64,000 nt of DNA, taken from Haliotis cracherodii. Taxonomy: Eukaryota. Under the pieces are notes generated by a model. It was given only the letters and a program-made list of their open reading frames with translations. It was not told the DNA's origin and did not search any database. The position numbers were made by a program, and so were the translations under genes. Where the stretch lies: contig NW_027266266.1 in NCBI RefSeq assembly GCF_022045235.1, positions 22,940,001 to 23,004,000 on the forward strand, read 5' to 3'. Numbering within the stretch: the first letter of the stretch is position 1; each line of letters begins with the position of its first letter. Of the stretch, positions 3,791 through 63,535 are shown piece after piece.

Positions 3791-5906
3791 ATGCTAGTCG
3801 CTATATAACTGCAATAATCTTGGACGCGACGTTAAACCCCATTGTATCTCACATCACCTATCATTTTCGAATGCAAAAAACTTTAAATGGCATCCTTCCA
3901 TTTACGAATCTACCTGTCCGTTGAAACAATGTGTCTATACGTTTTACGAGTACTTGCCTCATCTTACACAATTTACAACTTGAACCCCCTACCTGATGGC
4001 TGCATGTCCCTCTTCCGGGAAGGGGTGCGAGTCGTAGTTGTAGACGACCTCAGTGCGGGGTGAAGGGGAGGCTCTGCTGAGACTAGGCCATAGGTTGATG
4101 CCGTCCCGGTCTGTCACTACACATAACATACAAAATGAAGGTGGAACATTTTCATATTCATGTTGACATTCCGAGGTTGACTATAATGAATACCCCTGGT
4201 TCTGAACTGTACACTAATTGAATAATGGGTTACAATATGCTTGGGCTTTCACGAAATCATAGCGATATGGCTGGCCCAGTCGTCTACGGCGCTGTATTTG
4301 GCTGTGCGGAGAATTGCCCCCTAGAAACCTTTGTTCTTGGTTCGAATCTCGATTCGCCCTTGTTATGTCTCTAGATTTGTCAGCACCATCCCCGTGCTTA
4401 TAGGTTTCACTAAATTGGTAAACGTCATTGACCTGCTTAACTTCGGGTTTTCCTCCCACATCAACCTGACATGCTGTGAAACGACTGAAATACTGTCCAG
4501 TTCGGCATTAAATAAGTTAAGAATTGACTTTCACTTTCATACTCCAAGGAACTCACACAAAATGAAAGTCACTTCGTTTAATATTGTCCCAGACTGTTTC
4601 ATTCAGACATAATTTCGTTTAGTACGCGTGACGTTGTCTTTGCACTGAGGGCCATACAGTCAAACACACAAGATTAAAGTGGACCTAAGTTATCAGAAAT
4701 AACGTTTCCGCAAGTGCTTGCGTCATTTCAAGAACACAGTCTCGGAAAAAAAGGTATGAACGTCAAAACATGTCGTTCATACGCTTAAGAACGTCAGGTT
4801 CGCGGTCATGTGACCGGCCTCTCGTCCAATGGATAATCTGTATATTGTGTAAATAACTTTCAGATTAAACACATATATATATACTATGAAGATTCAACAA
4901 GTAAATATAAAGACATTTTTCACAAAATATGAGTTTTCCTGGAATTCTGGGGCGGAGAATCCCAAAGCAATATTATCTTATTAGATTGTATCACATCACT
5001 CTGTAAAGGTAATCCGATGGCCACGCCCTACTGTACCTGGGGTCCCCCCGGCAGCTGCTGTCAGGGTGGGCAGCCAGTCTACGGCGTGGATCATCCTGCA
5101 ACGACAACACGACGTTGTCCAGAGACGTCATTTAACACCATCAACAAACAACGGGGGGTGGGTGGGTATATCCTCCTTTCTACAGAGTAGCCCCGGATAC
5201 GGGAACTCCAGTTTGATGGATCAATGCTCACGCCATAAACCACTGGTTCTACCTCGCCCCAAATAAGTCTTTGTCTAACCTGTATTGTATTTTATATGTA
5301 TTGAACATATATAAACCATTTCCCGATTCCATTCACTGGCACTAAATAACGTATTTGACGAAATATAAAAGATAGCATTATGTTTTACTTTTAGCGTTTT
5401 ATTCCAACTTTGAATATTCATATCGGGAAAATCAAGGTTACAAATTGTCGATTTTTGGAAAGTATCTTTGTTCGAAATATGTTCACCCAGCAGTAAATGT
5501 TTACCCGGTAGGATGCGATCTTGTGGGACTGTAAACCGTCTTAAGGCAGCTCGGGTAATATTAATTCATGTTCAGAATGAATAAAATTATTTATATGTTT
5601 ACTGACCGGGTGTTTTAGTAACAAAATTAGATTTGAGTAGAAATACTGAAGGAAGCGCCCCAGCAATCTACGATTAACCCCCATTCACTGACTTTGCAGA
5701 GACTCAAAAGCGATAGCCATTCTTGTTGCAAATGTCTTCAGCATTATGTATACTACCCTTGACGATCGGGGTTAGAATTAGTCTTCAGCTATAAAAATGT
5801 CGAGGCCGTGCGTGCGATTTTGAGTGCGTTTGTGCGTGCGTTTGTGCGTGTGTGTCACTCGGAGCCCGACATTGCTGCTTGTAGCTTTATTAGTTGTTAT
5901 TATTAG

Positions 5907-5947
<41 letters not shown>

Positions 5948-8900
5948 GCCACGCTGGTACTGCTCACCCGTCAAACACAGTTCCGGTTTTCTGGAGACCG
6001 GATCCGTGCATGAATGCTGCTGCCCTCGTTCCCCCCTCGTACACAGTCACCTTGCCTCCTCGCAGGGGGTAATTGTTGCCGTGTTCGGTGATCCAGCCAC
6101 CATTCTGAAAGAAGGGAGTGAGTGAGTATAGTCTTACGCCGCTTGTAGCAATACACCAGCAATATCAAGGCGTGGGACACCAGAAATGGGCTTCACATAT
6201 CGTACCCATGTGGGAAATCGAACCCGGGTCTTTGGCGTGACGAGCGATCGTTTTAACTACTAGGCTACCCCACCGCCCCCCAGATAGAAGTTTACAATTA
6301 ATGTTTATTGACAAATACAAACATTATCAATGTTATTCCGCCGCACTCTGTAAAACGTATACGTAAACCTGGAATGCTATGACATCATGGTACAATGGAA
6401 GACATATAAATATTGATCATGTTTGATATTTAATTTAGGCGATATCATTTCGCTTGGCCAAATGGCACGTTCTTCTTTCCATTTAGGATTAAGAATTAAA
6501 AAAATGTTTATCAAAAAAGTATTCATTTCCGACATAAAACGTTATCAGTGTCAAGATGTCTGTTCGTTCTTACGTACTGAATTACACATAGAATTACCAT
6601 CTCTACATATAGAAAAGTATCTCTCCTACACGACATGCTTCAAATTAAAAAAAGGCACTTCGTAGATTTAGATGTTGAAGTCATAATGTACACATAGAGA
6701 CGGGCAGGTGGGGAAATATTACAAGAGAAGAGCGTTAGTGTTATTCCATAGCAGATATCTCGAGTGTGGAAGATAAAAAATACATTTTTGGTTTGTTTGT
6801 CCAGTTAGAGAGAAGCATCTACAGCCATCTGATATCAATGCTGTATTCTGACAAGTCCTGACCTCCCGATCCCGTTAGTCGCCTTTTACGACAAGCATGG
6901 GTTGCTGAAGGCCTATTCTACCCCGGATCTTCACGGGTCTGGTTTATTGTTTGTCATCGTACTCATGCCATCGTGTCACCACCAACAAATCAGTGCTGGG
7001 TAGTATGACGAACGCCATGCATGTTCATAATATCAACCATTGTTCCAGATTAAATTATTTACCAGCCGCTTTCGTTCAGCTGGAATATTGCTGACTGCGG
7101 CGTTAAACAACCAACACACAAAGAAAAACTGAAGTTGTTTAACAAACACTGGAAGGTGTCAACATATGTCAGACCCTCCGTGTGTTAAGATAAACTTGTG
7201 TGTGCATGTTTCCGCCTCCCTTTTTTCAAATACAGTAAACTACGGTTATAACGAACACGCTTATAACGAACTGACGGATATAACGAACTTACTTTTTTGG
7301 TCCCGACTATTTGCTGTAGTTATGCTGTATATATGCTTATAACGAACTACGGTTATAACGAACTAAAATTAGTAGTCCTTTTCAGTTCGTTATAACCGTA
7401 GTTTACTGTACCTGCATCCGTTATTTCTGAACATAATCGGGGGCGGTCGGGTAGCCGGTAGTGGTCAAAGCGTTCGCTCGTCACGCTGAAGACCCGGGTT
7501 CGATTCCCGACATGGGTACAATGTGTGAAGCCCATTTCTGGTAGCGGCGTAAAACCATACTCACTCTGAACGTAATCTTCGTTTGACATTTCATTTCCGA
7601 GATACGCTTCTTGCACACCAGATAGAACCCCAGTGAATAAATAATGTAATGGAAATAGCAGGTACGCTTCTACATCATGGTGATTTCGCGCATTGAGTGA
7701 GTGAGTGAGTGAGTGAGTATGGTTTTACGCCGCTTTTAGCAATATTCCAGCCTTATCACGGCGGGGGACACCAGAAATGGGCTTCACACATTGTACCCAT
7801 GTCGGGAATCGAACCCGGTTATTCGGCGTGACAAGCGAACTCTTTAAACATTTGGCTACCCGACCGACCACGATTTTGCACATTGAGGAAGTTTAGTCGC
7901 TGTTGGCTGTTATAATGGCGTAATAGGTGTTCCTTGTAATGATTCGATTCTTCCATTACAGAAAGTGTGCTGCTATCATGCAGGTGGAGCCTATCACTGC
8001 GCCTACTGAATGACAGATGGTATAAACTGATACTCACATCGGCAGTAAACAGAATCAGTGTGTCTTCCATTAATCCACTGTTTGTCAAGGCTTTTGTAAT
8101 GTTACCAATTGCGTCGTCAAGAGCTGAGACCATTCCTTGAAGCATGGAAATACCTATGACAACTACTGTTTGTTTGTTTGTTGTTTATACGCCGAAATAT
8201 TCCAGCTTTATGACAGCAGTCTGTAAATAATCGAGTCTGGACCAGACCATCCAGTGATTGACATCATGAACATCGATCAACGCAATTTGGATACGATGAC
8301 ATGCATCAACCAAGTTAGCAAGCCTGACCACCCGATCCCGTTAGTCGCCTCTTTCGACAAGCAAAGTCGCCTTTTACGGCAAGCATGGGTTGCTGAAGAC
8401 TACTGAGACCATTCCTTGAAGCAAGGAAATCAAGAACTCCATGAAAATATTATTTCTGCAAAATAAACTTGATATGCATATTTGAGTAACTGATTTAAAA
8501 GTAATCCGACATTCATTTTTTTAAATAACATCAAAGTCAATTGCATAATATGTATAGCTGTTTCACAGTTTGAAACTCAGAGATTTACTTTTTCAAAGCC
8601 AATTGAATAATTTTCCGACCATAGCAACAACTGATAAATAAGAAATATGAACTTTCTTGAGATATCTATTTCATACATACCACAATATTTACGACGACCT
8701 TCCGTCTTTACGTTCGGATACATTGCTTCATATTTTTCGGGAACCTTTAAAAATATGAAAAACATATAACAGGTACAGATATAACTTTTTGTCAAAAGGC
8801 CAGAAACAATACGAGTTAATGTCAGTAAGGAAGTATTACCTCTATGGGGGCGTGGACGGCTTGAAACGGCAGGTACAGAAACAACGGCCGGCTCTTGTCA

Positions 8901-11900
8901 TGACGCTCGATGATGCCGATTGCTTCATCAGCAAACCGATACTGAAACAGTGATGCTGAAACTATGATGCTGAAACAGTGATGCTGAAATTGGGATGCTT
9001 AAACAGTGATGCTGAAACTGTGATGCTGAAACTGTGATACCAAAACTGTGATGCTGAAACAGTGATGCTGAAACTGTGATGCCAAAACTGTAAGGCTGAA
9101 ACAGTGATGCCGAAACAGTGATGCCAAAACTGTGATGCTGAAACTGTGATGATGAAACAGTGATGCTGAAACTCTGATGCTGAAAAAGTGATGCCAAAAC
9201 TGTGATGCTGAAACTGTGATGCTGAAACAGTGATGCCAAAACTGTGATGCTGAAACAGTGATGCCAAAACTGTGATGCTGAAACTGTGATGCTGAAACTG
9301 TGATGCTGAAACAGTGATGCCAAAACTATGATGTTGAAACTGTGATGCTGAAACAGTGATGCCAAAACTATGATGCTGAAACAGTGATGCTGAAACTGTG
9401 ATGATGAAACTGTGATGCCAAAACTGTGATGCTGAAACTGTGATGCCAAAACTGTGATGCTGAAACTGTGAAGTGAACAGTGATGCCAAAACTGTGATGC
9501 TGAAAAAGTAATGCCAAAACTGTGATGCTGAACAGTAATGCCAAAACTGTGATGCTGAAATTGTAATGCCAAAACTGTGAAGCTGAACAGTGATGCTGAA
9601 ACAGTGATGCTGAAACTGTGATGCTGAAACTGTGATGCCAAAACTGTGATACCAAAACTGTGATGCCAAAACTGTGAAGCTGAACAGTGATGCCAAAACT
9701 GTGATGCTGAAAAAGTAATGCCAAAACTGTGATGCTGAACAGTGATGCCAAAACTTTGATGCTGAAAGAGTGATGCCAAAACTGTGGTGCTGAAACAGTG
9801 ATGCCAAAACTGTGATGCTTAAAGAGTGATGTTTAAAGAGTTTTAATGCCGATTCCAACAATATGATATATTATGACATGCCAGCTGAAAGAGGAAGAAC
9901 ACACAACAACGCAAATCGTAAACGTTCAAAGATTACGATCAAAATGTAGATTCGAACCCATGACCAGTGGATACTGGTACACCTAAGGGAAGAAACCATT
10001 GCTTAAATCGAATTGCGAAGCCTCGGACACCAAATATTATAACATTACAGGCTCTACACACCACAAGCATCCACAAAGCCATCTAAAAATACCCATAACC
10101 ATGTGCCATTGTAACCACCCGATCCTGAATAGGTTCTTGGTCGATACGTTACCGTTGAGTATGTGCCGTTGTCGGTCTTCTCGGGACTGGTGTTGTTGCG
10201 GAAGTCCAGGTAATCGAGAGTTGTGTGCGTGTAGTAGTCTTCCTGGGCGTTGTAGTAGCCGAAGAAGCTGTCAAAGCCACGGTACGTCGGGGTGCAATTC
10301 CAACTACAGAACCCAGTGTGCCACCTGGATCACACGACAGGGACAATGTAGCCTTGATACAGGTGGGGGACTTCTGCTGCTACTGATGCTTCCACTACTA
10401 CTACTGCTGCTGTTGTTGTTGTTGATGCTCCTGCTGCTGCTGCTGCGCCTTCTACTGACACTTCTACTACATCTGCTACTGCTACTGCATGATTTTAATC
10501 GTCAATGTTAACACCTTAACTGCCGGGCAAAAGAAAGTATACACCATGTCTGATGGTGGCTAAAGATGAAACAAACAAGAAATGGTTACTGGATGGGGAT
10601 ATGTTTCATACCTTACATAGTTGTTTTTTGGACCATAAGTTTGCACTGTTTTCGGCGACAGTAATGTTTTGACGTTTGTAATGTTTTGGTCAAATCCAAT
10701 TTTCAAAATGTATACTTTTACACGGGAGCTTATTGGGAACGACTACTACTAAACTGAAGGCTGTGGCGTAGCCTAGTGGATCAAGTGGTCAATCGTCACG
10801 CCAAAGCCCCTCAGTCGGGTCTTCTCGGCATGGATGCAATGTTTGCAGCACACTGTGGTTCTGCCGCAATATTTTTTCCAAGCGGTGTAAAATCCTACTC
10901 CCCTACTAACTACTATTGACTTGTTTTCCTTGAGTAAATGCTCGTATACATACTTCCCTATGATGTGTGTGGCATAGCCCAGCTCCTTCAATTTCTGCGG
11001 CAGGATCGTAATGTTCAGGGGCAGACAGACGGGCTGGTAATTCACAATAACCAGATGCTGTAAAAGAGGATTGTTCCGTGACATATATTTTACAGATTAC
11101 ACTTATATCATTATTCATCCATTTTTCAGAACGTTGTAACGGGGCGGTCTGGAAGCCTAGTGGTTAAAGCGTTCGCTCGTCACGCTGAAGACCCGGGTTC
11201 GATTCCCGACATTGGTACAATGTGTGAAGCCCATTTCTGGTGTCCCCCGCCGTGATATTGCTGGAATATTGCTAAAAGCGGCGTAAAACCGTACTCCCTC
11301 ACTCACTCAGAACGTTGTAACAGTTTGAATTCACATTCGCTCCACACACTAAAGATCCGGGTTCGATCCGCACATCTGTAAAACGTGTGAATCGCATTTC
11401 TGGTGTCCCCCGCCGAGATATGTCTTGAATATTGTTAAAAGCGGCGTAAAACCATACTCACTCACTTACTCGACGTGGTCAATGCCTTCAATGACAAATA
11501 GAGATTGTCGTCGGTCAAAATGCCCCCGTGAGGGGTCGCTGGTGGAATATGTCGACAGAACCAAATGCTTGTCGTATGAGTCGACTGAAAAGGATAGAGC
11601 TGTTATGTTGTGTGTGCCCCTGGCTTCTTATGTGTCAATGTACACCGAACGTGTGGATCGTTGTTCAAGCTATCAACCCCTTGTTTGCCTGGGTGTCGTT
11701 GTACAAAACAACCTTAGCGCTACGAATGTCGCAAGTCCATGTTAAGGTATGGGAGTAACGATCACCTAAGCGGTAGGATGGATTTGTACAACGGCACCCA
11801 GGTACAAGGTGAGGTGAGGTGTGTGTGGATGCTTGTACTAGTCCGGACTGATGCCGATTTATAGAACAGTCTCACTGAGATACCATGCCGCAGTTTAACA

Positions 11901-14191
11901 TGAATACCCCACTCAGACACAGTAAACTGACTCCGAGCCGACCAGTCCCTATTTTAGACCCTTTATGCCGAGCGCCAGACAGGGTAACAACAAGTACCAT
12001 CTTTTAACGTCTTTTGGTATGACGCGGTCGGGGATCGAACCTCGGACCTTCCCCTCTCCGGGTAGACCACGGTGGCGGTCTCCCAAGTACAAACCTTGAT
12101 AATCGATATAACTGGAATATCGCTGACTGCGTAAAACAACATTCACTCTTTCGGCACCACTCACCTGTAACCCCGTCTTGAAAGGGTAATAGCCAGACAT
12201 GAACGCACTTCTCGACCTGCGTGTAGGACATGTATAAATATACCACACAAAATAAGTTAAGGAACACCCGATTTGTTCTATAGTTAATTTACCATGCCAT
12301 GACAGGTGAAGTACAGTATTAGGACTTGAATCGGGTGTTCTTTACCTTACATTAGCATACATTGTAAACTATCGTCGTAAATCGCGAAGGCATGGCCAAC
12401 ACTGGTAACCGTTATACAAAATATATTCACCGGAATAAATCTTCATATGCCATAGTGTATCACCATAACTAGGGACTTGCTGAGATTCTGTACACAAAAT
12501 TGTCACCAGGGTCGCCGTTCAACGGATGAGTGAGGTATCTTTTTCTTTGGTGTCGTATATTAGGCTAAAAAATAAAAGTCTTGGTTCTCAGGCCATGCCC
12601 ACATCAACATAAAGTTCATTGCACTTTTCGTTTTTGCTTCCAATTTATATTTATTTTTTCCTGCATTGTGTTTAAGTATGAGGATTTTTATATTTTTTGG
12701 AAAATGGAAATAAAAACAAAACGTGCTGCAGACTTTATGATGATACGGGTGGTGCCTGAGGACCAAGACTGCACGGACTGCAGAGGGGGTGGACATAAGA
12801 TTGTTTCAGTCTCAAGTCTTCCACTACTCACGGACTGCAGAGCGGTTGGACATAGGAATGATTCAGTATCAAGCCTTCCACTACTCACGGACTGCAGAGC
12901 GGTTGGACATAGGAATGATTCAGTATCAAGCCTTCTGTTGCCAGCTTGTCGATGTTGGGTGTGATCATATCGGGGTTATGAAAGCCAACATCGTTCCATC
13001 CTGAAAATCATTTCAAAAGCTGAAATCATCTGTTCAGACAGATGATAATATACCACACTGATATCAGTGAGGTGCGCGTTCAAATACAAAGGCATCAGTT
13101 AAAATGTCTGCAATCGCTGATGGTATGGTGAATTACACAATTCCAATATAATTTCTAATTCAGCACAGATTATACCATATCATTGTTGGCCAAACGCTTC
13201 TTCGTTAGGCTTAATACAGTATTGCGCGTAGGTTCGAGTCACAGATTCGTGCCATGTACGCTTCAGTCTTCTCTCGCCGCGCCAAATTAGTAAACTTCTA
13301 CTAACTGCATCACTACGGGCCTTCTCAGTATGGACCGCCTCCGTGGTCTAGTGGTAGAGCGTCGGCCCGGAGAGCGGTAGGTCCGGGGTTCGATCCACAG
13401 CCGCGTCATACCAAAAGACGTTAAAAGATTGTACTTGTTGTTACCCTGTCTGGCGCTCGGCATTAAGGGGCTCGGAGTCAGTATTCTGTGTCTGAGTGGG
13501 GTATTCATCTTAAACTGCGGCGTGGTATCTCAGTGTGCTAGCACTATAAATTGGCATGCAGCCACACAAACACACACACGTACATGCATGTCGCTATATG
13601 AGTGCAATAATCTTGGACGCAACGTTAAACCCCATTACACCTCAGCTCACCTCACCTTCTCAATATAAGGTTGACCTTGATGTAACTCACTTAATAATAA
13701 AACTCTGGCATTAAAGGGCAAATTTTACAGGATCAGTCATAAATTATTCAAAATGATATACGATACTGCACCGAAGATTAATGAACATGTGACAAATCAT
13801 TCACTTGCAGAATAGAATGAAGTAATTTTAACCTGTGAATATATGCTAATAACTGATGTCGTATTTTATCCTCTGACTACAAAAGGTTTCATACATAAAA
13901 CGACGTTTAACTACTAGTATGTGTACATAGTGAGTTCACTCAATGGTTTCAGTGAATTGTCCGTACAGGAACACATGATATCCAGAAAAATGAAAATTCT
14001 CTTTATGAAATAGTGTAACGCTTGTTGAACAGTTTCCCAAATTGCAGCTTGGGGAAATTAAATTTTCGAATTCAAATCATACCGAGATCATCCGCCACTA
14101 TGAAGACAATATGGCGTGGACGTCCTGCTGCAGAAACGTCATCACAGAGGTTGACGATGACCAAAACTGTGCACAATAACTGGACAAACAT
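2449..14191 (-). CDS. Arylsulfatase B-like (ARSB/ARSI/ARSJ family) gene, copy 2, complete, 13 exons, ~481 aa
   Basis: Phase-consistent exons: 14191-14083, 13000-12889, 12216-12165, 11057-10954, 10324-10153, 8941-8840, 8744-8681, 8135-8038, 6104-5968, 5095-5037, 4116-3993, 3095-2959, 2624-2449 (1446 nt). Motifs: ADDLG, CSP|SR (formylglycine motif), [48 protein letters not shown]-terminal WSPGWC. Confidence 0.93.
2742..2882. repeat. GA-rich low-complexity tract
   Basis: (GA)n/(GAGT)n-rich tract in the last arylsulfatase intron. Confidence 0.8.
5907..5948. repeat. (TTG)n microsatellite
   Basis: Pure TTG run in an intron, about 20 bp from the donor at 5967. Confidence 0.95.
7233..7408. mobile_element. 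Tc1/mariner-pogo-type MITE (CAGT termini, TA TSD)
   Basis: TA|CAGTAAACTACGGTTATAACGAAC...GTTCGTTATAACCGTAGTTTACTG|TA with internal TATAACGAAC repeats; second copy at 61157-61331. Confidence 0.88.
8942..9835. repeat. 14-bp minisatellite ending exactly at an arylsulfatase 3' splice site (~60+ units)
   Basis: Units on the - strand are CATCAC(A/T)GTTTCAG and CATCACAGTTTTGG; the last TTTCAG is the acceptor of exon 8941-8840. Confidence 0.93.
10370..10490. repeat. Compound (CTG/CTA/TTG)n microsatellite
   Basis: Trinucleotide runs that produce a spurious poly-Leu ORF. Confidence 0.85.
11141..11306 (+). mobile_element. Short tRNA-derived SINE, family A (~165 bp), representative copy with 15-bp TSD
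   Basis: A box TAGTGG, B box GGTTCGATTCCC, (CTCA)n tail; TSD TCAGAACGTTGTAAC at 11126-11140 and 11307-11321. Other copies at about 6114-6280(-), 7440-7567, 7695-7870(-), 11335-11468, 20977-21132, 22125-22290, 31938-32105, 36395-36520, 44705-44878(-), 57997-58160, 59275-59400(-). Confidence 0.9.
12775..12936. repeat. 57-bp tandem array (3 units) made of arylsulfatase copy-2 exon-2 end plus donor
   Basis: Units start at 12775, 12832 and 12889; same unit as at 1-364. Confidence 0.92.
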
Positions 14192-19700: not shown

Positions 19701-22700
19701 TTTCATCCCTCCGTGGTACAAATTCCAGGGTCTGATTGAAGCCAAGAGGAAGGAGTTTGAGAGGATGGACCAAGAGCTGCAGCTGATGGTGGAGGAGAAG
19801 GCCAACGAGCTGGAGGAGAAGCAGCGGGAGGAGATGAGGAAGCTGTACGAGCAGACATCCAGATTACAGCTGAAGGAGTGAGTCACACTGGACATTTCTA
19901 TAGTCAGGCCGGAGAGCTTTTATTTCTTGGTTAATTTTTGGGTGTGAACAATCCTCATCAGGGTGTGTGAGATATTTTGGAATTTTTTATCATCATGAAC
20001 ATATTTATTATTGTTCAAAATGTTCACTGAAAGTGTTGTACATTGTCTGTGTCCTGTTCCACAAAGTGATTGTTGATTACAACATGAAATTCCAACCAAT
20101 AATCTTGATTCTTTATTCTTTTCTCATTCTTTTGTCTCATGTAGAAACATTAGATTGACTGTAACAAATAGAAAGGATTTCATTGAGTATATGGCTTTTA
20201 AATTTGATTGATTTACACATTAACTTCATAATACAGCAGTAATACTAGGTTGGGCTAGTTTACTTTACAAAGGCATGAACTTTTAACAATAAGGTAAATT
20301 ACAACACAAACCTGGAAATTACTTTAAGTACATAATAGTCCAATAAAATGTACAGAAACAATGCCTTAACTGCACTAAATAAACAGGAAGCTTAATATAT
20401 CATATACCTTTCATAAATTTAGGCCATGAGAATATTATGAACTAAGAAGAAATCTCTAGGGCGTATTTCCATGAGCCAAGTCTAAACCAGCCACAAACCC
20501 TCAATTATGAAAAATTAAGTTACTATGTATGGTAGAAATTAAGAAGATAAATTTATAAACAAATTCCTATTTATGAATTTTCAAATGAGTGACTAAATGT
20601 GCCTTACCATTACTTTAGACCTCACTGGCTCCTAGCATGACTTCCTCATGCATGCTGCTTAAAACACATGGTCATATGACTTCACCAATCTTTGCTTATC
20701 TCCCTTCTTATTAAGGTTGATATAAAATTGGCACATGATCAAAAATGAAACATAACATTCAAAACCAGGAAATTAAATAAACATCCTAACCATAACAATT
20801 ATTTAATATTGTATGCTACTGTTGTTATATGCAATACATAATTTGTGGAAATTCTAGAAACCAGATTTCATACCTCCTGAACCAATTAAGCTATCATAAT
20901 CGATAGAAAATAACAATAAACATTTTGACCATTACAGCGCTGTTAGCACTAAGTTGATGGTAACTCACTAAATATGCGGGGTCGGTGGGGTAGCCTTAAG
21001 CGTTAGCTCGTCACGCCGAAGACCCGGATTCAATTCCCGACTTGGGTACAATGTATTAAGCCCATTTCTGGTGTCCCCCATCGTGATATTGTAGAATATT
21101 GCTAAAAGTTGCGTAAATCCATACTCACTCACATAGTATGCAATCTTCACTTCCTGTTACGATCGTCCGTCCATTACACAAAGCAGTCTGAACTAAGATA
21201 CTTGTAAGTTAAGCTCAAGTGCTAAGCTGCTCTGGACTAACTTAGAATTGCTAAAATAGATCTTTTGCCAAAGCAACAAAGATGGTGACATTCCTAATGA
21301 TGTTGGATGAAATGAATCGAGTATTTAAGAAAGAAAGGAGACACTACCCGACAGCTTGACATATTCTCCGATGATGAACTGCAGCCATGGTATTTCTATG
21401 CAATGACATGCCTCTTAAAGCTGCTAGAACTTAGAAGCAGTGTCTCCATTCCTTACATCAAGTTACTCCTAGTCAAGACTTGATTGTTTACAGGAACATG
21501 ATATGGCTGGAATATTGCTGACTGTCTCAACATTCACTCACTCACTTTACGTCAGTGCCTCACCTCACATTATCTGGGGGGCGGTCGGGTAGCCTAGTGG
21601 TTAAAGCGTTCGCTCGTCACGCCGAAGACACAGGTTCGATTCCCGACATGGGTACAATGTGTGAAGCCCATTTCTGGTGTCCCCTGCCGTGATATTGCTG
21701 GAATATTGCTAAAAGCGGCGTAAAACCATACTCACTCACTCACTCACATTATCTGACTTGTGCTGCAGGAAAGCCGAGACAAGCAAGAGGATTCAGCAGA
21801 TGAGAGACAGCCATCGAACGAGGAAAAAGGTCAGTGGTTTGGAAGTTGAATTGTTCTTGTATCGTATCAAATGTTGGAACTTGTATCGTATCAAAAGTTT
21901 GATCTTGTATTGTATCAAATGTTTGATCTTGTATTGTATCAATGTTTGATCTTGTATCGTATCAAAAGTTTTGATCTTATATCATATCAATCAGATGTTT
22001 GATCTTGTATCGTATCAAAAGTTTTGATATCGCATCAATCAGATGTTTGATCTTGTATCATATCAGAAGTTTTGATATTGTAATGTATCAAAAGTTTTGA
22101 TCTTGTATCGATCAAATGTTTGATGGGGCGGTCGGGTAGCCCAGTGGTTAAAGCGTTTGTCCATCAAACTGAGGACCCAGGTTCGATTCCCAACATTGAT
22201 ACAATATGTGAAGCCCATTTCTGGTGTAGCTCGCCATGATATTGCTGGAATATTGCTAAAAGCTGCGTAAAACCATACTCACTCACTCACTCAAATGTTT
22301 GATCTTGTATTGTATCAAAAGTTTTGATCTTGTATCGTATCAAATGTTTTGATCTTGTATCATATTCAAACCCTTTTTCTAGAGTTACTTCAGTGAATGA
22401 GATTACGAATCACATGTCTATTGATCAGGTTTTGTTGCTAAGATAATCTCCAAAAGTCAGTTAACATATGTTGTTTTGAGTCTCGGATGGCAGTGCATCA
22501 TTTGCATCTTGTGCATCTTGGGTTGTGACAACAACTCTACATAACATATGGGGACATAGTCACGTCACGTATCACAGAACTTAATTTGTCCTGGTTTTCA
22601 TGAATTCTCTTTTTTCAGGGTGACCTTGCTTACCAAAGGTTATCGCAATTAACAGGTTTGTGTTTCAGTCATGACTGGTTACATTAGGCTCTTTCTTATA

Positions 22701-25700: not shown

Positions 25701-28700
25701 TGTTGTATTAATGTCTTATGTTTGCAATGGAGTTTTGTTTTTTTCATCAAAAGGTAAGTACAAGGTAGGTTTTTTTCAATATGTTTCAACATGGGGAAGG
25801 GGTCAGACATTGCATGCTTGTGACAGTTGTCCTTGTGTCTGGGGGTTGAAGTTTATGGCAGTATTGCTCCCAGACCTGGCGGGTAGCCAAGTGTGCGAAA
25901 GCTATGCCCAAATTTTTAAAAGTACTCAATTAACTTCGAAATTTTACTGCATCTGCCATCTTGTTTATTTGACTTACTGACTTTTGCCATTGACTTATTA
26001 CATTTCTTGGTGTGAATGTTGTCCAAACTGCACGAAATTGCTTTCCTCATTTTTCGGGAAAACCTGCTCACATCCTCGAAAAATCAATAGTTATCACAAA
26101 AGTGATTTCCAGACCAATAGTTACTCCGACAATGTCCTACATGTAACACATGTACCTGATGTTATGTCTGACTAGCGTAAAGGGTGTTACATCACCTGTT
26201 ATGGTGTTTTTACCCATTCACGAGTCCCTGTCTTTATGACACTAGACAGTGTAATAACTAATGGTTTATATCACTGTTTAGCACAAGCTTCCTCGGGTAT
26301 GTCTCACGGCATCTTCCCGAGGCCAGTTTCCACCCTTGCTGAACTAGGATGGAATTCCTGGGTTCGATCGTAGCGCCACCAGTGGGTATTACGAGTTATG
26401 TCCATTCTATGCCTCTCCCATATGGACCAATCAGATTCCACCTCTCGTATCACATGCATTTGCTTCAAACAAAATGGTGGCGCCCAGTCAAGACAATCGG
26501 ATCGACCATCAGGATCTATTTTGTGATGAAACGGTTCTTACTTCAGGAAGTACATCAAATCACGTGAGCACCTTGATTAAAAACATGAAAAGATTTGGAA
26601 AATATCTGTTGACAACAAGTTGGTGATGCACATGCTTTGCAAATCCTGCATGACAGTTTACGAACCAGATTTCGATTTCAGTTCGCGAATTTGATTGGAC
26701 AATGCATAGACACGTTAGTCCAGCCAAAATCTAACTCCATAATCCCAGCCTAGTTCGGCAAGGGTGGAAACTGGACTTTTATAGTCACTTAACTCACTTG
26801 CCTCGGGAAGATGGTCTCACGGTTGTAGTCCCATACAGGTTATGGTACTGAACCCCACAGTCCAACCAATAAATGCATAGTGTGAGATACGATAAGTTTA
26901 AAAATTTGAAAATTTGACAATAAATTGTATATTGACTTATCCTATCTCACACACTATATGCCCTCCCAATGATCCCCACATCACAGCTACTCTAGCCTGT
27001 CCATTCTAAGAAAGAGAATGATGTGGCAGGGCTAGTCAGGTGATTAAGTCGTGTAAGGTCACAGAGCACAGGATGATGGTGTGTGATCCTTTTGTTTGGG
27101 TGGTAAATGTGGTGATGGAGGGACGTTTTCGAGATCGAAAGAAGAAGGAAGAAATGCAGTGTGAGATAGGATAAGTATATCAACATACAATTTATATGTT
27201 AATTTTCAGTTTATTTTCATGTATTCCCTTTTAAGATCCAAGATGACAAACTGCTTGAAGGAGAGAGGAAGAAGCTGCAACTGCAGGAAGAAGAAAGGAG
27301 AAGGTAGACCTTTAGGGACTTGATATAACTAAACCATTTATCATATCAGACCCGTGGATATCCAGGGTAGAATAGGTCTTCAGCAACCCATGCTTGTCGT
27401 AACAGGCGACTATGCTTTTCATAAGAGGCGACTAACGGGATTGGGTGGTCAGACTCGCTGACTTGCATGTCATTGTATCCAAATTGTGTGGATCGGTGCT
27501 CATGATGTCAATCACTGGATTGTCTGTTCCAGACTCGATTACTTACAGACCATCGTCATATAGCTGGAATATTGGTGAGTGCGGCGTTAAACAACAAACA
27601 AATAAAAAAACAAATATTATTACAGGGACACAGGTGGCCAAGGCATAACAATTCACTTGCAGAGTTCAGTTATTACAACCTGATTTGAAATTTCTTGAGG
27701 AATTGATTGTTTCAAGTTTTGACTAATAATTAGTGGTTCTAGAAGCAAACGTTGTGCATCGGGTGTCAGAATTAGTCAAACGGTAGACTGCGTGTCATCG
27801 TAACTCAAAGTCATGGATCATTGCTTACATGTATGTATATATAGATTTCAGAATGGAACTCTTTGTCAATTTCTTAAAAAATGTGTGGTGTTTTTTCAGG
27901 AATGAACAAGAAAAGAAGCATGCAGTGTTGCAGTTTTATTCAAGGATTAAACAAACCCATGACAACCTGACAAGCTTGTTCGACAACTGTAAGTACAAGC
28001 AGCACCTGCCTGAGTCAGCCCACACCCCCAAGCAGGTGTGTGTGCAGATCCTAGCCAAGGCCGACGCCATGATGAAGAAGGGGGGCCTGGCGCCGGAGGA
28101 CCTGCAGGGGATGAAGAACTTGATGGAGTACTCAAAGAACACTTACGACTTCATGGTGAAGCACCTAGGTATGGCAAGAGCATGTGTGGCTGAGTGGTGA
28201 AGCACCTAGGTGTGGCAAGATCATGTGTGGCTGAGTGGTGAAGCACCTAGGTGTGGCAAGAGCATGTGTGGCTGAGTGGTGAAGCACCTAGGTGTGGCAA
28301 GAGCATGTGTGGCTGAGTGGTGAAGCACCTATGTATGGCAAGAGCATGTGTGACTTCATGGTGAAGCACCTATGTATGGCAAGATCATGTGTGGCTGAGT
28401 GGTGAAGCACCTAGGTGTGGCAAGAGCATGTGTGACTGAATGGTGAAGCACCTAGGTGGGGCAAAAGCATGTGTGACTTCATGGTGCACATCAATATGTG
28501 GCAAGAGCATGTGTGGCTGAGTGGTGAAGCACCTAGGTGTGGCAAGAGCATGTGTGGCTGAGTGGTGAAGCACCTAGGTGTGACAAGAGCATGTGTGGCT
28601 GAGTGTTGAAACATCAATATGTGGCAAGAGCATGTGTGACTTCATGGTGAACATCAATATGTGGCAAGAGCATGTGTGGCTGAGTGGTGAACATCAATGT

Positions 28701-31059
28701 GTGGCAAGAGTATGTGTGGCTGAGTGGTGAATCACCTAGGTGTGGCAAGAGCATGTGTGGCTGAATGGTGAACATCAATATGTGGCAAAAGTATGTGTGA
28801 GTGAGTGGTGAACATCAATATGTGGCAAGAGCATGTGTGACTTCATGGTGAACATCAATATGTGGCAAGAGTATGTGTGGCTGAGTGGTGAATCACCTAG
28901 GTGTGACAAGAGCATGTGTGGCTGAATGGTGAACATCAATATGTGGCAAGAGTATGTGTGAGTGAGTGGTGAATCACCTAGGTGTGACAAGAGCATGTGT
29001 GGCTGAATGGTGAACATCAATATGTGGCAAGAGCATGTGTGGCTGAGTGGTGAATCACCTAGGTGTGACAAGAGCATGTGTGGCTGAATGGTGAATCACC
29101 TAGGTGTGGCAAGAGCATGTGTGTCTGAATGGTGAACATCAATATGTGGCAAGAGCATGTGTGGCTGAGTGGTGAATCACCTAGGTGTGACAAGAGCATG
29201 TGTGGCTGAGTGGTGAATCACCTAGGTGTGGCAAGAGCATGTGTGGCTGAATGGTGAACATCAATATGTGGCAAGAGCATGTGTGGCTGAGTGGTGAATC
29301 ACCTAGGTGTGACAAGAGCATGTGTGGCTGAGTGGTGAAGCACCTAGGTGTGGCAAGAGCATGTGTGGCTGAATGGTGAACATCAATATGTGGCAAGAGC
29401 ATGTGTGGCTGAGTGGTGAATCACCTAGGTGTGACAAGAGCATGTGTGGCTGAGTGGTGAATCATCTAGGTGTGGCAAGAGCATGTGTGACTTCATTGTG
29501 AACATCAATATGTGGCAAGAGCACGTGTGAGTGAGTGGTGAACATCAATGTGTGGCAAGAGCATGTATGAGTGAGTGGTGAAACATCTAGGTATGGCAAG
29601 AGCATGTATGAGTGAGTGGTGAAACATCTAGGTGTGGCAAGAGCATGTGTGACTTCATGGTGAACATCAATGTGTGGCAAGAGCATGTGTGACTGAATGG
29701 TGAACATCAATATGTGGCAAGAGCATGTGTGGCTGAGTGGTGAAGCACCTAGGTGTGACAAGAGCATGTGTGAGTGTGTGTTGAAACATCAATGTGTGAC
29801 AAGAGCATGTGTGGCTGAGTGGTGAATCACCTAGGTGTGGCAAGAGCATGTGTGGCTGAATGGTGAACATCAATATGTGGCAAGAGCATGTGTGGCTGAG
29901 TGGTGAAACATCTAGGTATGGCAAGAGCATGTGTGGCTGAGTGGTGAAACATCTAGGTATGGCAAGAGCATGTGTGGCTGAGTGGTGAAACATCAATGTG
30001 TGACAAGAGCATGTGTGGCTGAGTGCTGAAATATCAATGTGTGACAAGAGCATGTGTGGCTGAGTGGTGAAAAATGTAGGTGTGACAAGAGCATGTATGA
30101 GTGAGTGCTGAAATATCTAGGTATGGCAAGAGCATGTGTGGCTGAGTGGTAAAACATGTAGGTGTGACAAGAGCATGTATGAGTAAGTGCTGAAATATCT
30201 AGGTGTGACAAGAGCATGTGTGGCTGAGTGGTGAAACATCAATGTGTGACAAGAGCATGTGTGTGGTGAAACATGTATGATGTAGGTTTGGCAAGAGCAT
30301 GTGTGATTTCATGATGAGGTGAGGTGAGGTGAAATTGGGTTTAACGTCGTGTCCAAGATTATTGCACTTATATAGCGACGTGCATTCACGTGTGTGTGTG
30401 TGTGTGGCTGCGCTGCGGCTGCTTGTACTAGTCCGGCCTGATGCGGATTTAAAGTGCTAGCTCACTGAGATACCATGCCGCAGTTCAACATGAATACCCC
30501 ACTCAGACACAGTATACTGACTCCGAGCCGACCCGTACTTGTTTTAGCCCCTTAATGCCGAGCGCCAGAAAGGGTAACAACAAGTACCATCTTTTAACGT
30601 CTTTTGGTATGACGCGGCCGGGGATCAAACCCCGGACCTTCCGCTCTCTGGGCGGATGCTCTACCACTAGACCACAGAGGCGGTCTGATTTCATGATGAA
30701 ACATCTAGCTGTGGCATTTTGACTCTATATTAAGACAGTTAAGTTTGCTATCATCACCAATGTATTAACATATGCCAATAAGTTGAAAGTATGTCATGAA
30801 TATGTTGTGAGACCTATGGCTTAAAATTAAGATGAAATAGACATCCATGACTTGGTGTACTTGCTGAGAACATGCCAAACTGTCATGAATATATTTTTCT
30901 GCATACAAGTATTGGACAATTGTGTCAGTAACATTGAATCAAGGTCAGTATATTGTGTGCTACAAATTGTTTAGGTTTTAGAGAAGTACATCTTTCTTTT
31001 TATTGTTCTTTCAGAGGAGGCCACAAGGAAAGGCAAGGCAGAGGAAGTCGAGCTGGCCA

Positions 31060-31091
<32 letters not shown>

Positions 31092-34000
31092 GCACAGCAT
31101 AAGGCAGCGGCCGAAGCAGCTCAGGTAGGAGACATGAGTTAATTAGTGACAATTGTTGAGGAGCCTTAAAAACTGTATAGAACTTTGGCCACTGAAAAAT
31201 GATCTGAATGATTTCTGAAAAACAACTTTGAAGAAAAGGTTATGCAGCTAATTGTTTTCGGAAGGGTTGCGAACATTGTCTGTCGCCATAACACATTAAT
31301 TATTAGATTTTCATCAAGTTCACCTCAGATCCCTACCAACAGCACATCATTTTATTGGCCCAAAGTAACTACCAACAATGAAACTTTCTCTGTGTGTTAT
31401 GTTCTTTCTTTACTTGATACAATATGTCATATATGTACAGGTCTGTCAAACCTGGATGCCAGGATTGGGTTGTCAATAAAAGAATGAAACAAAAGCCTCC
31501 TGCCTCCAAATTTTGAATTTGTATGAAAATCTAGAAATTAATTGTGCTCTGATATTAAGAAAACAATTGTTTTACCTTACCTGATGCTGCACAGTGCTTT
31601 AGCTTCCTACCTTATACAAACAGACAGTACTGGAACAGAGACACAGCTGAAACAGACCAATAGCCCATGCCCCAATAGGTAGGGAAGCAAAACCACTGTG
31701 TAGCATCAGGTACCTATAACAACATTGCATTATACCGAAATGCTCATATCAGTGCACATAATCTTGATAATGAAGATTGGGATGCGTATCTGTTGTTAGC
31801 TGTGTTGTTTGAAAGGATAAGGTTTTTATTGTTATTTTAGAACTAAATATAAGCCATTCTGTTTCGGATAGTGTGAGGTTTTCCATAACATGTGTACAGG
31901 CACATAGAGACACAATTGTTAGTTCTTCCCAACAGAGGGAAGGTTGGGTAGCATGTGGTTAGAGCGTTTGCTCGTCACGGCAAAGACCTGGGTTTGATTC
32001 CCGACATAGGTACAATGTGTGAAGCCCATTTCTGGTTTTCCCCGCCGTCATATTGCTGGAATATGGCAAAAAGCGGCATAAAACCAAACATGCTCAGACT
32101 CACTCTTCCCAAGAGACAGCATCAGTTTATTATCTGCCTCTGAGACATGGAACAAGTTGCATGTATGGATACATGTGTCTTGTGTACCTGTTGTAGGCAG
32201 CGGCTGCACCAACGCCCGGTGTTCCAGCAACTCCAGGCACTCCATCAGCAGGTAGGTTGGAACGAGGGATCTTGAGTAGAGATTACCGAGCAGCTTGATC
32301 ACCCCGGAGTGAGAACTGACCAGATAACTTCAAGAGTCAGTCAGGGTCATGGATGGCCTAGTTGTCAAACATGTCTAAGGCGCCGCAATTCACTGTGCAG
32401 ATTTTCATCCCTGGATGTCAGAAAAACTGTTTGACCTGTGGTGATTCCTTGTTAGAATAGGTCCCCAGCAACCTATGCTGGTCGTAAGAGCCGACAAAAC
32501 GGATCGGGTGGTCAGGCTCAGTGACTTGGTTCGTTGTGTATTATCATACCCCGATGATGTAGATCATTGCTCACAATCTTGATCACTGGGTTATCAGGTC
32601 CATACTCGAATATTTGTGGCCTTAAAAAAGCAAATTAGTGTCCATAGAGGTTTTATACCAACTCACTCCCTGTTCCTGCATACACTGTAGCTATTACTGC
32701 TAGTGATGACTTGTCACAACTTGGATCAGAAAAATCTACAGCTTCCTGTAACTACATGTTTTGAATAAGGGCTGGTTCATCTCAGCTGGTAAATGTTTCT
32801 GACTTGTAGCCACATCAATGCCTTCATATAAATTTCCAACCTCACTTGACCCGTGAAGATCTGGGGTAGAATAGGTCTTCAGTAACCCATGCTTGCCGTA
32901 AAAGGCAACCTTTCGTGTCGTAAGGCACGACTGACAGGATGGGGTGGTCAGGCTCACTTACTTGGTTGATGCTTGTCATCGTATTTCAAATGCGTGGAAC
33001 AATGCTCATGATGTCAATGACTTGATTATTTAGATACCGATGTTATATAAGCCGGAATATTGCTGAGTACGAAGTTAAACAACAAAACAAGCATCCAACC
33101 TCACTTGTCTCGAAAATGATTTCTGTTCTACAATCATTGATATTTTGAAATCTAGAAATCTAACGAAACCTAGGACTTGCCAGTTTTTTGTGCATAAATT
33201 CCTCTAGAGAAAAACAAACTTGTGTTGAGGACAGAAATAAATGTGTTTCATGTGTGTTTCAGTTGCCCGGAGACAGAGTGTTATTGATGAGGTGGTGACA
33301 GAGTATGAGCTGTACAAGGCCAAGCTAGATGATGTGCTGAAGTCCCTTGCTGCATTTACAGCTAATACACAGGTAAGGCCAAGCTAGATGATGTGCTGAA
33401 GTCCCTTGCTGCGTTTACAGCTAATACACAGGTAAGGCCAAGCTAGATGATGTGCTGAAGTCCCTTGCTGCGAATACAGCTAATACACAGGTAAGGCCAA
33501 GCTAGATGATGTGCTGAAGTCCCTTGCTGCGTTTACAGCTAATACACAGGTAAGGCCAAGCTAGATGATGTGCTGAAGTCCCTTGCTGCGTTTACAGCTA
33601 ATACACAGGTAAGGCCAAGCTAGATGATGTGCTGAAGTCCCTTGCTGTGTTAACAGCTAATACACAGGTAAGGCCAAGCTAGATGATGTGCTGAAGTCCC
33701 TTGCTGCGTTTACAGCTAATACACAGGTAAGGCCAAGCTAGATGATGTGCTGAAGTCCCTTGCTGTGTTAACAGCTAATACACAGGTAAGGCCAAGCTAG
33801 ATGATGTGCTGAAGTCCCTTGCTGCGTTAACAGCTAATACACAGGTAAGGTCAAGCTAGATGATGTGCTGAAGTCCCTTGCTGTGTTAACAGCTAATACA
33901 CAGGTAAGGCCAAGCTAGATGATGTGCTGAAGTCCCTTGCTGCGTTAACAGCTAATACACAGGTAAGGCCAAGCTAGATGATGTGCTGAAGTCCCTTGCT

Positions 34001-37000
34001 GCGTTTACAGCTAATACACAGGCAAGGCCAAGCTAGATGATGTGCTGAAGTCGCTTGCTGCGTTTACAGCTAATACACAGGTAAGGCCAAGCTAGATGAC
34101 ATGTTGAAGTCCCTTGCTGCGTTAACAGCTAATACACAGGTAAGGCCAAGCTAGATGATGTGCTGAAGTCCCTTGCTGCGTTTACAGCTAATACACAGGT
34201 GAGGCCAAGCTAGATGATGTGCTGAAGTCCCTTGCTGCGTTTACAGCTAATACACAGGTAAGGCCAAGCTAGATGATGTGCTGAAGTCCCTTGCTGCGAA
34301 TACAGCTAATACACAGGTAAGGCCAAGCTAGATGATGTGCTGAAGTCCCTTGCTGCGTTAACAGCTAATACACAGGTAAGGCCAAGCTAGATGATGTGCT
34401 GAAGTCCCTTGCTGCGTTTACAGCTAATACACAGGTAAGGCCAAGCTAGATGATGTGCTGAAGTCCCTTGCTGTGTTAACAGATAATACACAGGTAAGGC
34501 CAAGCTAGATGATGTGCTGAAGTCCCTTGCTGCGTTTACAGCTAATACACAGGTAAGGCCAAGCTAGATGATGTGCTGAAGTCCCTTGCTGCGTTTACAG
34601 CTAATACACAGGTAAGGCCAAGCTAGATGATGTGCTGAAGTCCCTTGCTGCGTTAACAGCTAATACACAGGTAAGGCCAAGCTAGATGATGTGCTGAAGT
34701 CCCTTGCTGCGTTAACAGCTAATACACAGGTAAGGCCAAGCTAGATGATGTGCTGAAGTCCCTTGCTGCGTTTACAGCTAATACACAGGTAAGGCCAAGC
34801 TAGATGATGTGCTGAAGTCCCTTGCTGCGTTTACAGCTAATACACAGGTAAGGCCAAGCTAGATGACATGTTGAAGTCCCTTGCTGCGTTAACAGCTAAT
34901 ACACAGGTAAGGCCAAGCTAGATGATGTGCTGAAGTCCCTTGCTGCGTTTACAGCTAATACACAGGTAAGGCCAAGCTAGATGATGTGCTGAAGTCCCTT
35001 GCTGCGTTTACAGCTAATACACAGGTAAGGCCAAGCTAGATGATGTGCTGAAGTCGCTTGCTGCGTTTACAGCTAATACACAGGTAAGGCCAAGCTAGAT
35101 GATGTGCTGAAGTCCCTTGCTGCGTTTACAGCTAATACACAGGTATCCAGGTGCGACCCAGACTTCATCAACATTGAAGTTACCTGACAGTCAAATAGGG
35201 GAGCTAACTCTTGTCAGTTCACTAAGTGATTCACATATCCGAAAAGTTCACATATCATGATCAATCACTGGTTTGTCTGGTCCAGACTCAGTTATTTACA
35301 GGCTGCTGTTACCCTATGTTAATTTTATTATGTTTGTAATTGAAACAACAGGAAGGATTCCTGGTTGTATGTCTTTAAAAAGTTGACACTGTAACAAGTC
35401 CAATTGTCTGTCTTCCCCAGATGAAGAAGTATCGGTTTGAGCTGCAGAAATCCGTGAACACCCCCATCAATTCCATCGCCCCGGTCGATGGCTCCAACCT
35501 GAGGGACAAGCTGCAGAAACTCATCCACCTGCTCGGGGGACATCAGATCGAGGGCAAACATGTCTCTGCTAAAGATACACCAGAGGGAATCTCCTTCTGT
35601 AAAAACCTCATAGCCAAAATGTTTGTGGTAAGACCTTGTTTTTCAGATATAGATTTATATTACTTATACTTTTACCTGCCGTGATATTGCTGGAATATTG
35701 CTAAAAGCGGCGTAAAACCATACTCACTCACTCACTTATACTTAGTTACAAGACCCGTGAAGATCCGGGGTAGAATAGGTCTTCAGCAACCCATGCTTGC
35801 CATAAGCGACTATGCTTGTCGTAAGAGGCGGCTAACGGGATCGGGTGGTCAGGCTCGCTGACTTGGTTGATGCATGTCATCGATCCGATTTGCGTGGATC
35901 GATGCTCATGAAATTAATCACTGGATTGTCTGGTCCAGACTCGATTATTTACAGACCGCCGTCAAATAGCTGGAATATTGCTGAGTGCGGCATTAAACAA
36001 CACCCTAACCAACCAACCAACTTAGTTATAATACCGGGTCACAGGTAGCCGTCATCCAAGGCACCATAATTCGCTGTGAAGAATTACCTCCCTTGGGCAT
36101 GCCAGAAGCAATTTCTTTGTAAAGGGTATATTGCATGTATCAGTGCTTTAACATTATCTTGCAGAAAAAGGGAGAAGAGCAGGTCTCTTCTAAACATGAA
36201 TCAGCATTTGCGATCGCCATGGTAGCAGCAGGACTGTGGTTAGAACACAGTGATGTTGGGGACCTGATGTTGGCCCACTTCCACAGCTTCTGTCCCTACA
36301 TTGTGCCGCTCTACATACCCAAAGACAGCAGCATGTCGTCCCAGGACTACCACAGGTAGGACCATCGTATAGCTCCCATATACTAACTGGAAAAGGGGTG
36401 GTCAGGTAGCCCAGTGGTCAAAAGCGTTTGTCATCATGCAATAGGTCTGGGTTTGATTCCCCATTTGGGTACAATGTGTCCCATTTCTGGTGTTCCCTGC
36501 TTGATCACTATACTGGAATGGATGTAGATGTGTTGACATCTTCCTCAGATTTAACGAAAGTCTTTGTTGTTTCTGCAGACCACTTCGGGGATTTGAGGGA
36601 AGAATAGATCCCCAGTAATAGCCTACTAAAGTGTAGATTGGGTGGTCTAGATCTGTGATTTTGCAAGGACTGTTTCAGTCACTGACTAGATAATTGTTTG
36701 GGAATCCTGAAATTTAATGCAGATATTTAGGTGATTTCCTCACATCCACTGTCAACTCTGTTGCAAGTACAAATCCACAGGAATGTTTTGTGTGGGTTCT
36801 CTTGGTTTAGTATTTCTTAGAAAATATTTGCTATTTCTGAATTGGATTTTGTAAGCTTCACATTTTATGAACTTCTTTTCTTTTCTTTTCAGAATGCTAG
36901 GTTACAAAGTTGATTCCAACGGAACCATAGAAGCTCAGGACAAGTTCCTGAAGAGGATGTCTGGCATTATGCGACTGTATGCCGCGATTCTTGTCTCGTC

Positions 37001-62495: not shown

Positions 62496-63535
62496 GTACA
62501 CACAGAGACAAAAACACACACGGACATATACGTTACCTTAGTAACGCAACGGGTACACATACGGACAAATACGTCACCTAAGTAACGCAACGGTACACAC
62601 ACGGACAAAGACGTTACCTTAGTAACGCAACAGATACACACACGTACAAAGACGTCACCTTAGTAACGCAACAGATACACACACGTACAAAGACGTCACC
62701 TTAGTAACGCAACAGGTACACACACGTACAAAGACGTCACCTTAGTAACGCAACAGATGCACACACGTACAAAGACGTCAACTTAGTAACGCAACAGGTA
62801 CACACACGTACAAAGACGTCACCTTAGTAACGCAACAGATACACACACGGACAAAGACGTCACCTTAGTAACGCAACAGGTACACTCACGTACAAAGACG
62901 TCACCTTAGTAACGCAACAGATGCACACACGTACAAAGACGTCACCTTAGTAACGCAACAGATGCACACACGTACAAAGACGTCACCTTAGTAACGCAAC
63001 AGATACACACACGTACAAAGACGTCACCTTAGTAACGCAACAGGTACACACACGTACAAAGACGTCACCTTAGTAACGCAACAGATACACACACGGACAA
63101 AGACGTCACCTTAGTAACGCAACAGGTACACTCACGGACAAATACGTCAACTTAGTAACGCAACAGATACACACACGTACAAAGACGTCAACTTAGTAAC
63201 GCAACAGATACACACACGTACAAAGACGTCACCATATTAACGCAACAGATGCACACACGTACAAAGACGTCACCTTAGTAACGCAACAGATGCACACACG
63301 TACAAAGACGTCACCTTAGTAACGCAACAGATGCACACACGTACAAAGACGTCACCTTAGTAACGCAACAGATGCACACACGTACAAAGACGTCACCTTA
63401 GTAACGCAACAGATACACACACGTACAAAGACGTCACCTTAGTAACGCAACAGATACACACACGTACAAAGACGTCACCTTAGTAACGCAACAGATACAC
63501 ACACGTACAAAGACGTTATCTTCGTAACGGAACAA
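62470..63535. repeat. 41-bp tandem array (~24 units) derived from SGSH exon-3 end plus donor
   Basis: Unit CCTTAGTAACGCAACAG(A/G)TACACACACGTACAAAGACGTCA resembles the junction CCTAAGCAATGC[CGGGATCAG]AACAG|GTACACACAGAGACAAA. Confidence 0.88.

Follow-up and report, generated by a model that had tools for sequence, protein, structure and literature searches.

A donor-anchored minisatellite at the end of GLE1 exon 10 in the abalone Haliotis cracherodii

The GLE1 locus and its exon 10 array

A 64,000-nucleotide (nt) stretch of the genome of the abalone Haliotis cracherodii (NCBI RefSeq assembly GCF_022045235.1, contig NW_027266266.1, positions 22,940,001 to 23,004,000, forward strand), referred to here as the window, contains the gene for GLE1 and, at the end of exon 10 of this gene, a tandem array of 59-nt units that repeats the exon-intron junction. 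Positions are those of the window, and a slash within a sequence marks an exon-intron boundary or its copy. When the GLE1 proteins of H. asinina (P0001) and H. rubra (P0155) are compared with the window by tblastn, all 13 coding exons are found to be present and open (Table 1). In addition, when the whole genome is searched with the protein of H. rubra, this locus alone is recovered, indicating that the gene is single-copy. Its identity is confirmed by searches in which the exon products were used one by one: the product of exon 11 matches the Pfam GLE1 family (PF07817, 1.8e-8) and solved structures of human GLE1 (4e-6). Among 1.8 billion representative proteins, the search found P0001, a 696-amino-acid protein of H. 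asinina named mRNA export factor GLE1-like, which is 94% identical over exon 11, and a second protein search gave the H. rubra GLE1. The essentiality of GLE1 has been established in yeast and vertebrates. Exon 8 also holds a CAG/CAA codon repeat (31062-31099) that encodes a polyglutamine run, which H. rubra GLE1 shares and which is long there as well.

Table 1. Features of the GLE1 gene and of its exon 10 array in the window
Feature	Position	Strand	Basis
Intact GLE1 gene with 13 coding exons, from start to stop codon	16757..37343	+	tblastn of H. asinina and H. rubra GLE1
GLE1 exon 10, 110 nt, phase 1 at its start and phase 0 at its end; last 57 nt are copy 1	33263..33372	+	
59-nt tandem array, 31.0 copies	33316..35145	+	Tandem Repeats Finder and junction count
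First donor GTAAGG, made by the copy 1/copy 2 junction, presumably used	33373..33378	+	orthologue contiguity, U1 pairing
30 intronic copies with 29 further repeat-made pseudo-donors (27 GTAAGG, GCAAGG, GTGAGG)	33375..35144	+	
Variant pseudo-donor GCAAGG	34022..34027	+	U1 pairing -6.8 kcal/mol
Variant pseudo-donor GTGAGG	34199..34204	+	U1 pairing -11.6 kcal/mol
Terminal donor GTATCC, probably ancestral	35143..35148	+	follows the last copy and runs into unique intron
Unique intron remainder, 275 nt, acceptor ends in cag	35146..35420	+	
GLE1 exon 11, in which the conserved C-terminal GLE1 domain begins	35421..35627	+	

Tandem Repeats Finder reports the array as 31.0 copies of a 59-nt unit (96% matches, 0 indels, score 3436), and its length by measurement equals 31.02 units. 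An independent, in-register count gives 31 ACACAG/G junctions that are spaced by exactly 59 nt, with their last exon-like bases at 33372, 33431, and so on to 35142. These junctions are followed by GTAAGG in 28 cases, by GCAAGG (34022) and GTGAGG (34199) in one case each, and at the end by a terminal GTATCC (35143). A preliminary description of this DNA had listed the same 31 junctions, and both the types and the coordinates it gave are exact. It had also taken the array to be made of copies of the end of exon 10 together with its donor, and this too is borne out. Each repeat unit corresponds to the final 57 nt of GLE1 exon 10 together with the GT that opens the intron; copy 1 is coding, and this edge copy is the authentic exon-intron junction of the host gene. 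A search of the whole 1.18-Gb assembly, which represents a single haplotype, reveals no second site of the 59-nt unit. A coding capacity of the array itself was considered and rejected, the longest open stretches being 26 codons on the + strand and 58 codons on the - strand.

An array of this kind could in principle be a product of assembly, in which case the repeats or at least their number would not be real. However, the units of the array fall into 11 different sequences whose order is non-periodic, its length of 1.8 kb is modest, and such arrays are common in this genome, where they occupy 12.7% of a 200-kb random sample. Because the 13 distinct unit variants are scattered without any regular period, the array appears to be real sequence rather than the result of copy-and-paste by the assembler, and an artefact is considered highly improbable.

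Donor strength and the choice of splice junction

The GTAAGG donor that now closes exon 10 matches the consensus at eight of nine positions and has a predicted U1 pairing of -11.5 kcal/mol. The GTATCC donor at the far end of the array is weak, with six of nine consensus positions and a predicted pairing of -7.2 kcal/mol. Among the 12 donors of GLE1, that of exon 9 alone pairs as strongly as the new GTAAGG donor. Within the array, 27 pseudo-donors share with the first donor not only the CAG/GTAAGG sequence but also the 57-nt upstream context. By the same prediction, the GC pseudo-donor is weakened and the GTG pseudo-donor is unchanged in strength. The present intron (33373-35420) is 2,048 nt long, and 15 of the 20 nt upstream of its acceptor at 35420 are pyrimidines.

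Which of these donors is joined to exon 11 can be judged from the proteins of other species. Translation of 33265-33372 gives ..ELYKAKLDDVLKSLAAFTANTQ (also given as ..VIDEVVTEYELYKAKLDDVLKSLAAFTANTQ), and translation of exon 11 from 35421 onward gives MKKYRFELQ.. (also given as MKKYRFELQKSVNTP..). Both H. asinina and H. rubra GLE1 have ..AAFT(T/A)NTQ directly before MKKYRFELQ.., with zero residues between the parts encoded by exon 10 and exon 11, and exon-wise alignments show that the proteins of Aplysia (P0158) and P0161 are likewise contiguous across this boundary. Read-through of the first donor adds the residues VRPS, then a stop, in agreement with the earlier claim that every donor except the first brings an immediate stop. 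Because the orthologue residues are adjacent and read-through gives VRPS and a stop, a working mRNA, judging from these homologues, must carry the 33372^35421 junction, that is, it must use the first donor. The preliminary description had listed choice of the first donor among several outcomes, and a gene that is intact and single-copy and has contiguous orthologues upholds this junction.

Given these findings, the first donor is probably the one in use, and the remaining ones probably leave with the intron, which would make the array a donor-anchored minisatellite of the type termed a "mirage". In this model, the splicing machinery would take the most upstream among identical donors, the one closing exon 10, and the other 30 sites would be excised within the intron as silent pseudo-sites. 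That the first donor is used exclusively or almost so, and how the array grew, are what we infer from these comparisons.

Close precedents exist for this model, and a second donor-anchored array in the same gene, at exon 7, also speaks for it. Mirages have been described in amphioxus, where they carry AG/GT splice signals without disturbing mRNA splicing (PMC3087553, PMC3902484). As in the amphioxus cases (Adh3, troponin C, the globins BflGb6/BflGb9, and PGBD5), the GLE1 array is a tandem minisatellite with a unit that crosses an exon-intron boundary and an edge copy that is authentic. The amphioxus copies hold splice signals and normal mRNA is made there, whereas in abalone GLE1 splicing is presumably normal. 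The abalone array differs in that its host is a mollusc and in that it has 31 copies with near-perfect, near-consensus donors. Furthermore, the GLE1 unit extends only 2 nt into the intron, and a new, stronger donor therefore arises at the repeat junction. No description of splice-junction minisatellites in abalone was found in the searched literature. The GLE1 array represents a large and clean mirage in a phylum for which the searched literature has none, although the class itself is known.

A second precedent is the 37-bp variable number tandem repeat in intron 7 of the human F7 gene, which starts at the exon 7 boundary and presents 5-9 identical donors (Borensztajn et al. 2006, PMC1557585). 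When 50 minigene constructs were expressed in mammalian cells, the most upstream donor was always chosen, and the pseudo-sites, although functional, were silent even when strengthened to 91% of the consensus (PMC1557585). The two systems are alike in that the first repeat spans the boundary and in that identical pseudo-donors come after the authentic donor, with a single acceptor for which all compete; in GLE1, 27 such pseudo-donors carry the same CAG/GTAAGG and the same 57 nt upstream. In F7 splicing from the most upstream donor was demonstrated by experiment, whereas in GLE1 it is deduced from homology; the F7 repeat has 5-9 copies, compared with 31 in GLE1, and the rule comes from mammalian cells, without a molluscan counterpart.

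Several considerations weigh against exclusive use of the first donor. The first four or so donors, with expected exons of 110, 169, 228, and 287 nt, cannot be told apart by exon definition alone. Masking of the later donors by RNA structure was examined as a candidate and rejected, since a stretch of three units folds less well than shuffles do (z = +2.2); no structure that hides these donors is found. Because neither RNA structure nor exon length accounts for the choice, it must be positional. In addition, the 30 pseudo-donors, as strong as the real one, are far above the 5-9 tested in F7. In vitro, duplicated strong donors have sometimes favoured the site nearest the acceptor. Finally, the argument for the first donor is built from homology together with what is known of one chordate and one mammal.

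These same points bear on another hypothesis, in which the array is leaky. In this case, the first donor would be dominant, and a measurable fraction of transcripts would use later donors, gain the VRPS-stop, and be lost to nonsense-mediated decay, so that the length of the array would tune or burden GLE1 expression. Such leakage would be in keeping with 27 pseudo-donors that are identical to the real one, including the 57 nt upstream, and with the lack of RNA structure masking the later sites. GLE1 also contains a second, older donor-anchored array (28154-30305; 41-nt unit, 53 units, about 85% identity), whose copy 1 is the real end of exon 7, CCTAG/GTATGG. In this array, 16 of the 53 units read CAAT/ATGTGG, having lost the GT and one base, and such a loss in about one-third of the units at the homologous place would fit mild selection against pseudo-donors. 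However, it can also be plain neutral decay, and in the young exon 10 array there is no excess of donor-killing changes: the six donor bases hold 2 of the 13 distinct array changes (GC and GTG), and both sites remain donor-like. Nor do the precedents point to leakage, given the silence of the F7 pseudo-sites even at 91% consensus (PMC1557585) and the finding that amphioxus mirages yield no aberrant mRNA (PMC3087553, PMC3902484). When residues 360-490 of H. asinina GLE1 were used as the query, no truncated ..TQVRPS forms were found, the matches being two RefSeq abalone models only, and with exon 11 alone as the query, there were no transcript-derived protein fragments across the junction; in both cases length filters make the blank weak. 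A leaky array is regarded as unlikely, and silent pseudo-sites behind a positionally chosen first donor are favoured.

A different fate for the repeats was raised in the preliminary description, which noted that each unit resembles a mini-intron bounded by GT and AG and might be removed by ratchet (recursive) splicing. In such a process, units would be taken out stepwise from the donor to the unit-end AG, and CAG/GTAAGG would be regenerated each time. One half of the required motif stands, in that AG/GTAAGG is present at the unit boundaries. Furthermore, the commonest variant, a T-to-A change at unit position 42 (11 units), creates a branch-point-like TTAAC 15 nt before the unit-end AG. The acceptor half does not hold up as well. 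The lone branch-like word of the unit itself, CTAAT, lies 8 nt from the unit-end AG. Only 11 of the 20 nt upstream of the unit end are pyrimidines, compared with 15 of 20 at the real acceptor, and a competing AG 11 nt upstream of the unit end (tttacag) has a slightly better tract; its use would leave an 11-nt, frameshifting insert. In addition, 59 nt would be very short for an animal intron, and recursive sites are known from very long introns, compared with 2 kb here. The likeness of the GLE1 array to the recursive sites of Drosophila and vertebrates is therefore limited to the AG/GT core: those sites consist of a strong 3' splice site fused to a donor within a very long intron, whereas the GLE1 array has no pyrimidine tract, a competing upstream AG, steps of 59 nt, and a 2-kb intron. 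Ratchet splicing of the array is consequently considered very unlikely.

Origin of the array and variation among its units

After the last copy, the sequence runs on as ATCCAGGTGCG.. into the 275 nt of unique intron. This arrangement suggests that an intron of about 278 nt with the donor CAG/GTATCC was already there in the ancestral state. The 59-nt segment, comprising 57 nt of exon 10 and the GT, would then have been duplicated in tandem, so that GT came to stand before AAGG and formed CAG/GTAAGG, and amplification to 31 copies would have followed by unequal exchange or slippage. As a result, the intron would have grown from about 278 nt to 2,048 nt, exon 10 would now be closed by a near-consensus donor, and the old weak CAG/GTATCC would have been shifted 1.77 kb downstream. 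The duplication would have upgraded the donor at the end of exon 10, a point that is absent from the preliminary description.

That description instead invoked a model in which tandem duplication of an exon segment containing AGGT gives rise to a new intron (the Rogers model). In this model, which has been reproduced for ATP2A1, the duplicate copies supply the donor as well as the acceptor of the new intron (PMC3265369). The GLE1 array shares with ATP2A1 (PMC3265369) and with potato RdRp (PMC4974935) the feature that a duplicated segment containing AG/GT creates a functional donor, and the first donor of GLE1 is itself a product of the duplication. However, the acceptor in use (35420) and the 275 nt of intron before it are unique and lie outside the repeat, the old donor CAG/GTATCC is kept at the far end of the array, and the repeat's own AG is a poor acceptor. 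Thus, a pre-existing intron of about 278 nt was expanded; the acceptor of GLE1 is old and unique and an existing intron has been enlarged, whereas in the Rogers model donor and acceptor both come from the copies. A newly gained intron is accordingly given almost no credence. The proposal that an AAGG microhomology seeded the first duplication fares no better. The sequences that were compared, TACAAGGCC and GTAAGGCC, merely set copy 1 against later copies, and for this reason the match is a consequence, not a seed, of the duplication. One A is all that the actual breakpoints have in common, with ..GTAC to the left of the unit (AAGG..AGGT) and ATCC.. to its right.

The 30 intronic copies differ from one another by a mean of 1.76 per 59 nt (about 3%). 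The similarity between units is slightly raised at lags of 13-14 units (1.35-1.38 differences), a weak sign that some 14 units were once duplicated together. The changes are not spread evenly over the unit: positions 38-42 hold 5 of the 13 distinct changes (binomial P = 0.003), two of which are CpG transitions, and the clustered changes fall in the GCGTTT that directly precedes ACAG. T-to-A changes within these positions are present in 13 of the 30 intronic copies. The change at position 42 also shortens the U-run of the cryptic acceptor tttacag, and the clustered changes weaken that acceptor, although the clustering may carry no meaning. GCA occurs only in the exon copy, and every other copy reads GCG or GTG, as in CpG decay.

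Two of the units may preserve older sequence. Units 14 (34083-34141) and 27 (34850-34908) share three linked transitions and would read D-M-L, compared with D-V-L in the exon. At this site, H. rubra and H. asinina read D-M-T, and many other molluscs have Val in the column concerned. The two units could thus be relics of an older state of the exon, a suggestion that is given little weight, as the polarity of the change is ambiguous.

Other arrays in the window and the meaning of the GLE1 array

Besides the arrays at exons 7 and 10, GLE1 contains a third minisatellite (24/25-nt unit, 21851-22124 and 22291-22370). This array starts 19 nt after the exon 5 donor AAAAAG/GTCAGT, and the junction is excluded from it. 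To place these arrays in context, 20 evenly spaced segments of 10 kb (200 kb in all) from contigs C1, C2, C4, C5, and C6 were sampled. Tandem arrays account for 15.4% of the sampled bases, and the 12.7% given above lies in 26 arrays with a period of at least 20. Some arrays exceed 2 kb, such as those at 4335-8327 of segment L027 (53 nt x 75) and at 6094-10000 of segment L028 (53 nt x 74). The abalone genome is exceptionally rich in minisatellites.

If births of arrays are taken to be uniform, a rough estimate from small numbers gives about 2.5 arrays for a gene the size of GLE1 and about 0.2 that span a junction; in fact, two of the three intronic arrays of GLE1 span a donor. This enrichment at junctions amounts to a small-number hint. 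In the sampled array units, donor-like 9-mers are not in excess over random segments (8/9 matches, 1 compared with 0.9 expected; 7/9 matches, 8 compared with 6.3, P = 0.27), a test of low power, as real GLE1 donors often score 5-7/9.

Other repeats in the window were recorded in passing. A tRNA-derived element resembling a short interspersed element (30330-30690, - strand) directly follows the older GLE1 array and ends in a tRNA-like arm of the GGTTCGATCCC type read in reverse, and a similar element of 163 nt is duplicated at 11172-11471. Further minisatellites lie at 62514-63534, 12772-12935, 1-363, and 8938-9831, and the preliminary description ties these to junctions of neighbouring genes (SGSH, two arylsulfatase paralogues, and an array at an acceptor). 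On visual inspection, the SGSH array begins immediately behind ..CAGAACAG/GTACACAC, and the units at the arylsulfatase genes contain CCGTGAGT on the - strand.

More speculatively, splice sites in abalone genes might be preferred places for junction-anchored arrays to form or to be retained. The first duplication in GLE1 may have been favoured by replacing the weakest donor of the gene, GTATCC, with a near-consensus one, and the other 30 U1-binding sites would act in cis on the transcript or feed variants into the end of the exon by unequal exchange. This idea is viewed as unlikely.

Whatever its history, the GLE1 array is a natural experiment in 5' splice-site choice that is more extreme than F7, since a single-copy, essential gene faces 28 identical, near-consensus donors across 1.7 kb. 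It is likewise an example of a weak donor being upgraded by a single tandem duplication, and of sevenfold intron growth that needs no transposons. If later donors do leak, the length of the array would be a heritable dial on GLE1 dosage. If, on the other hand, the first junction alone is made, then the rule that the most upstream donor wins would reach to molluscs and to 30 competitors.

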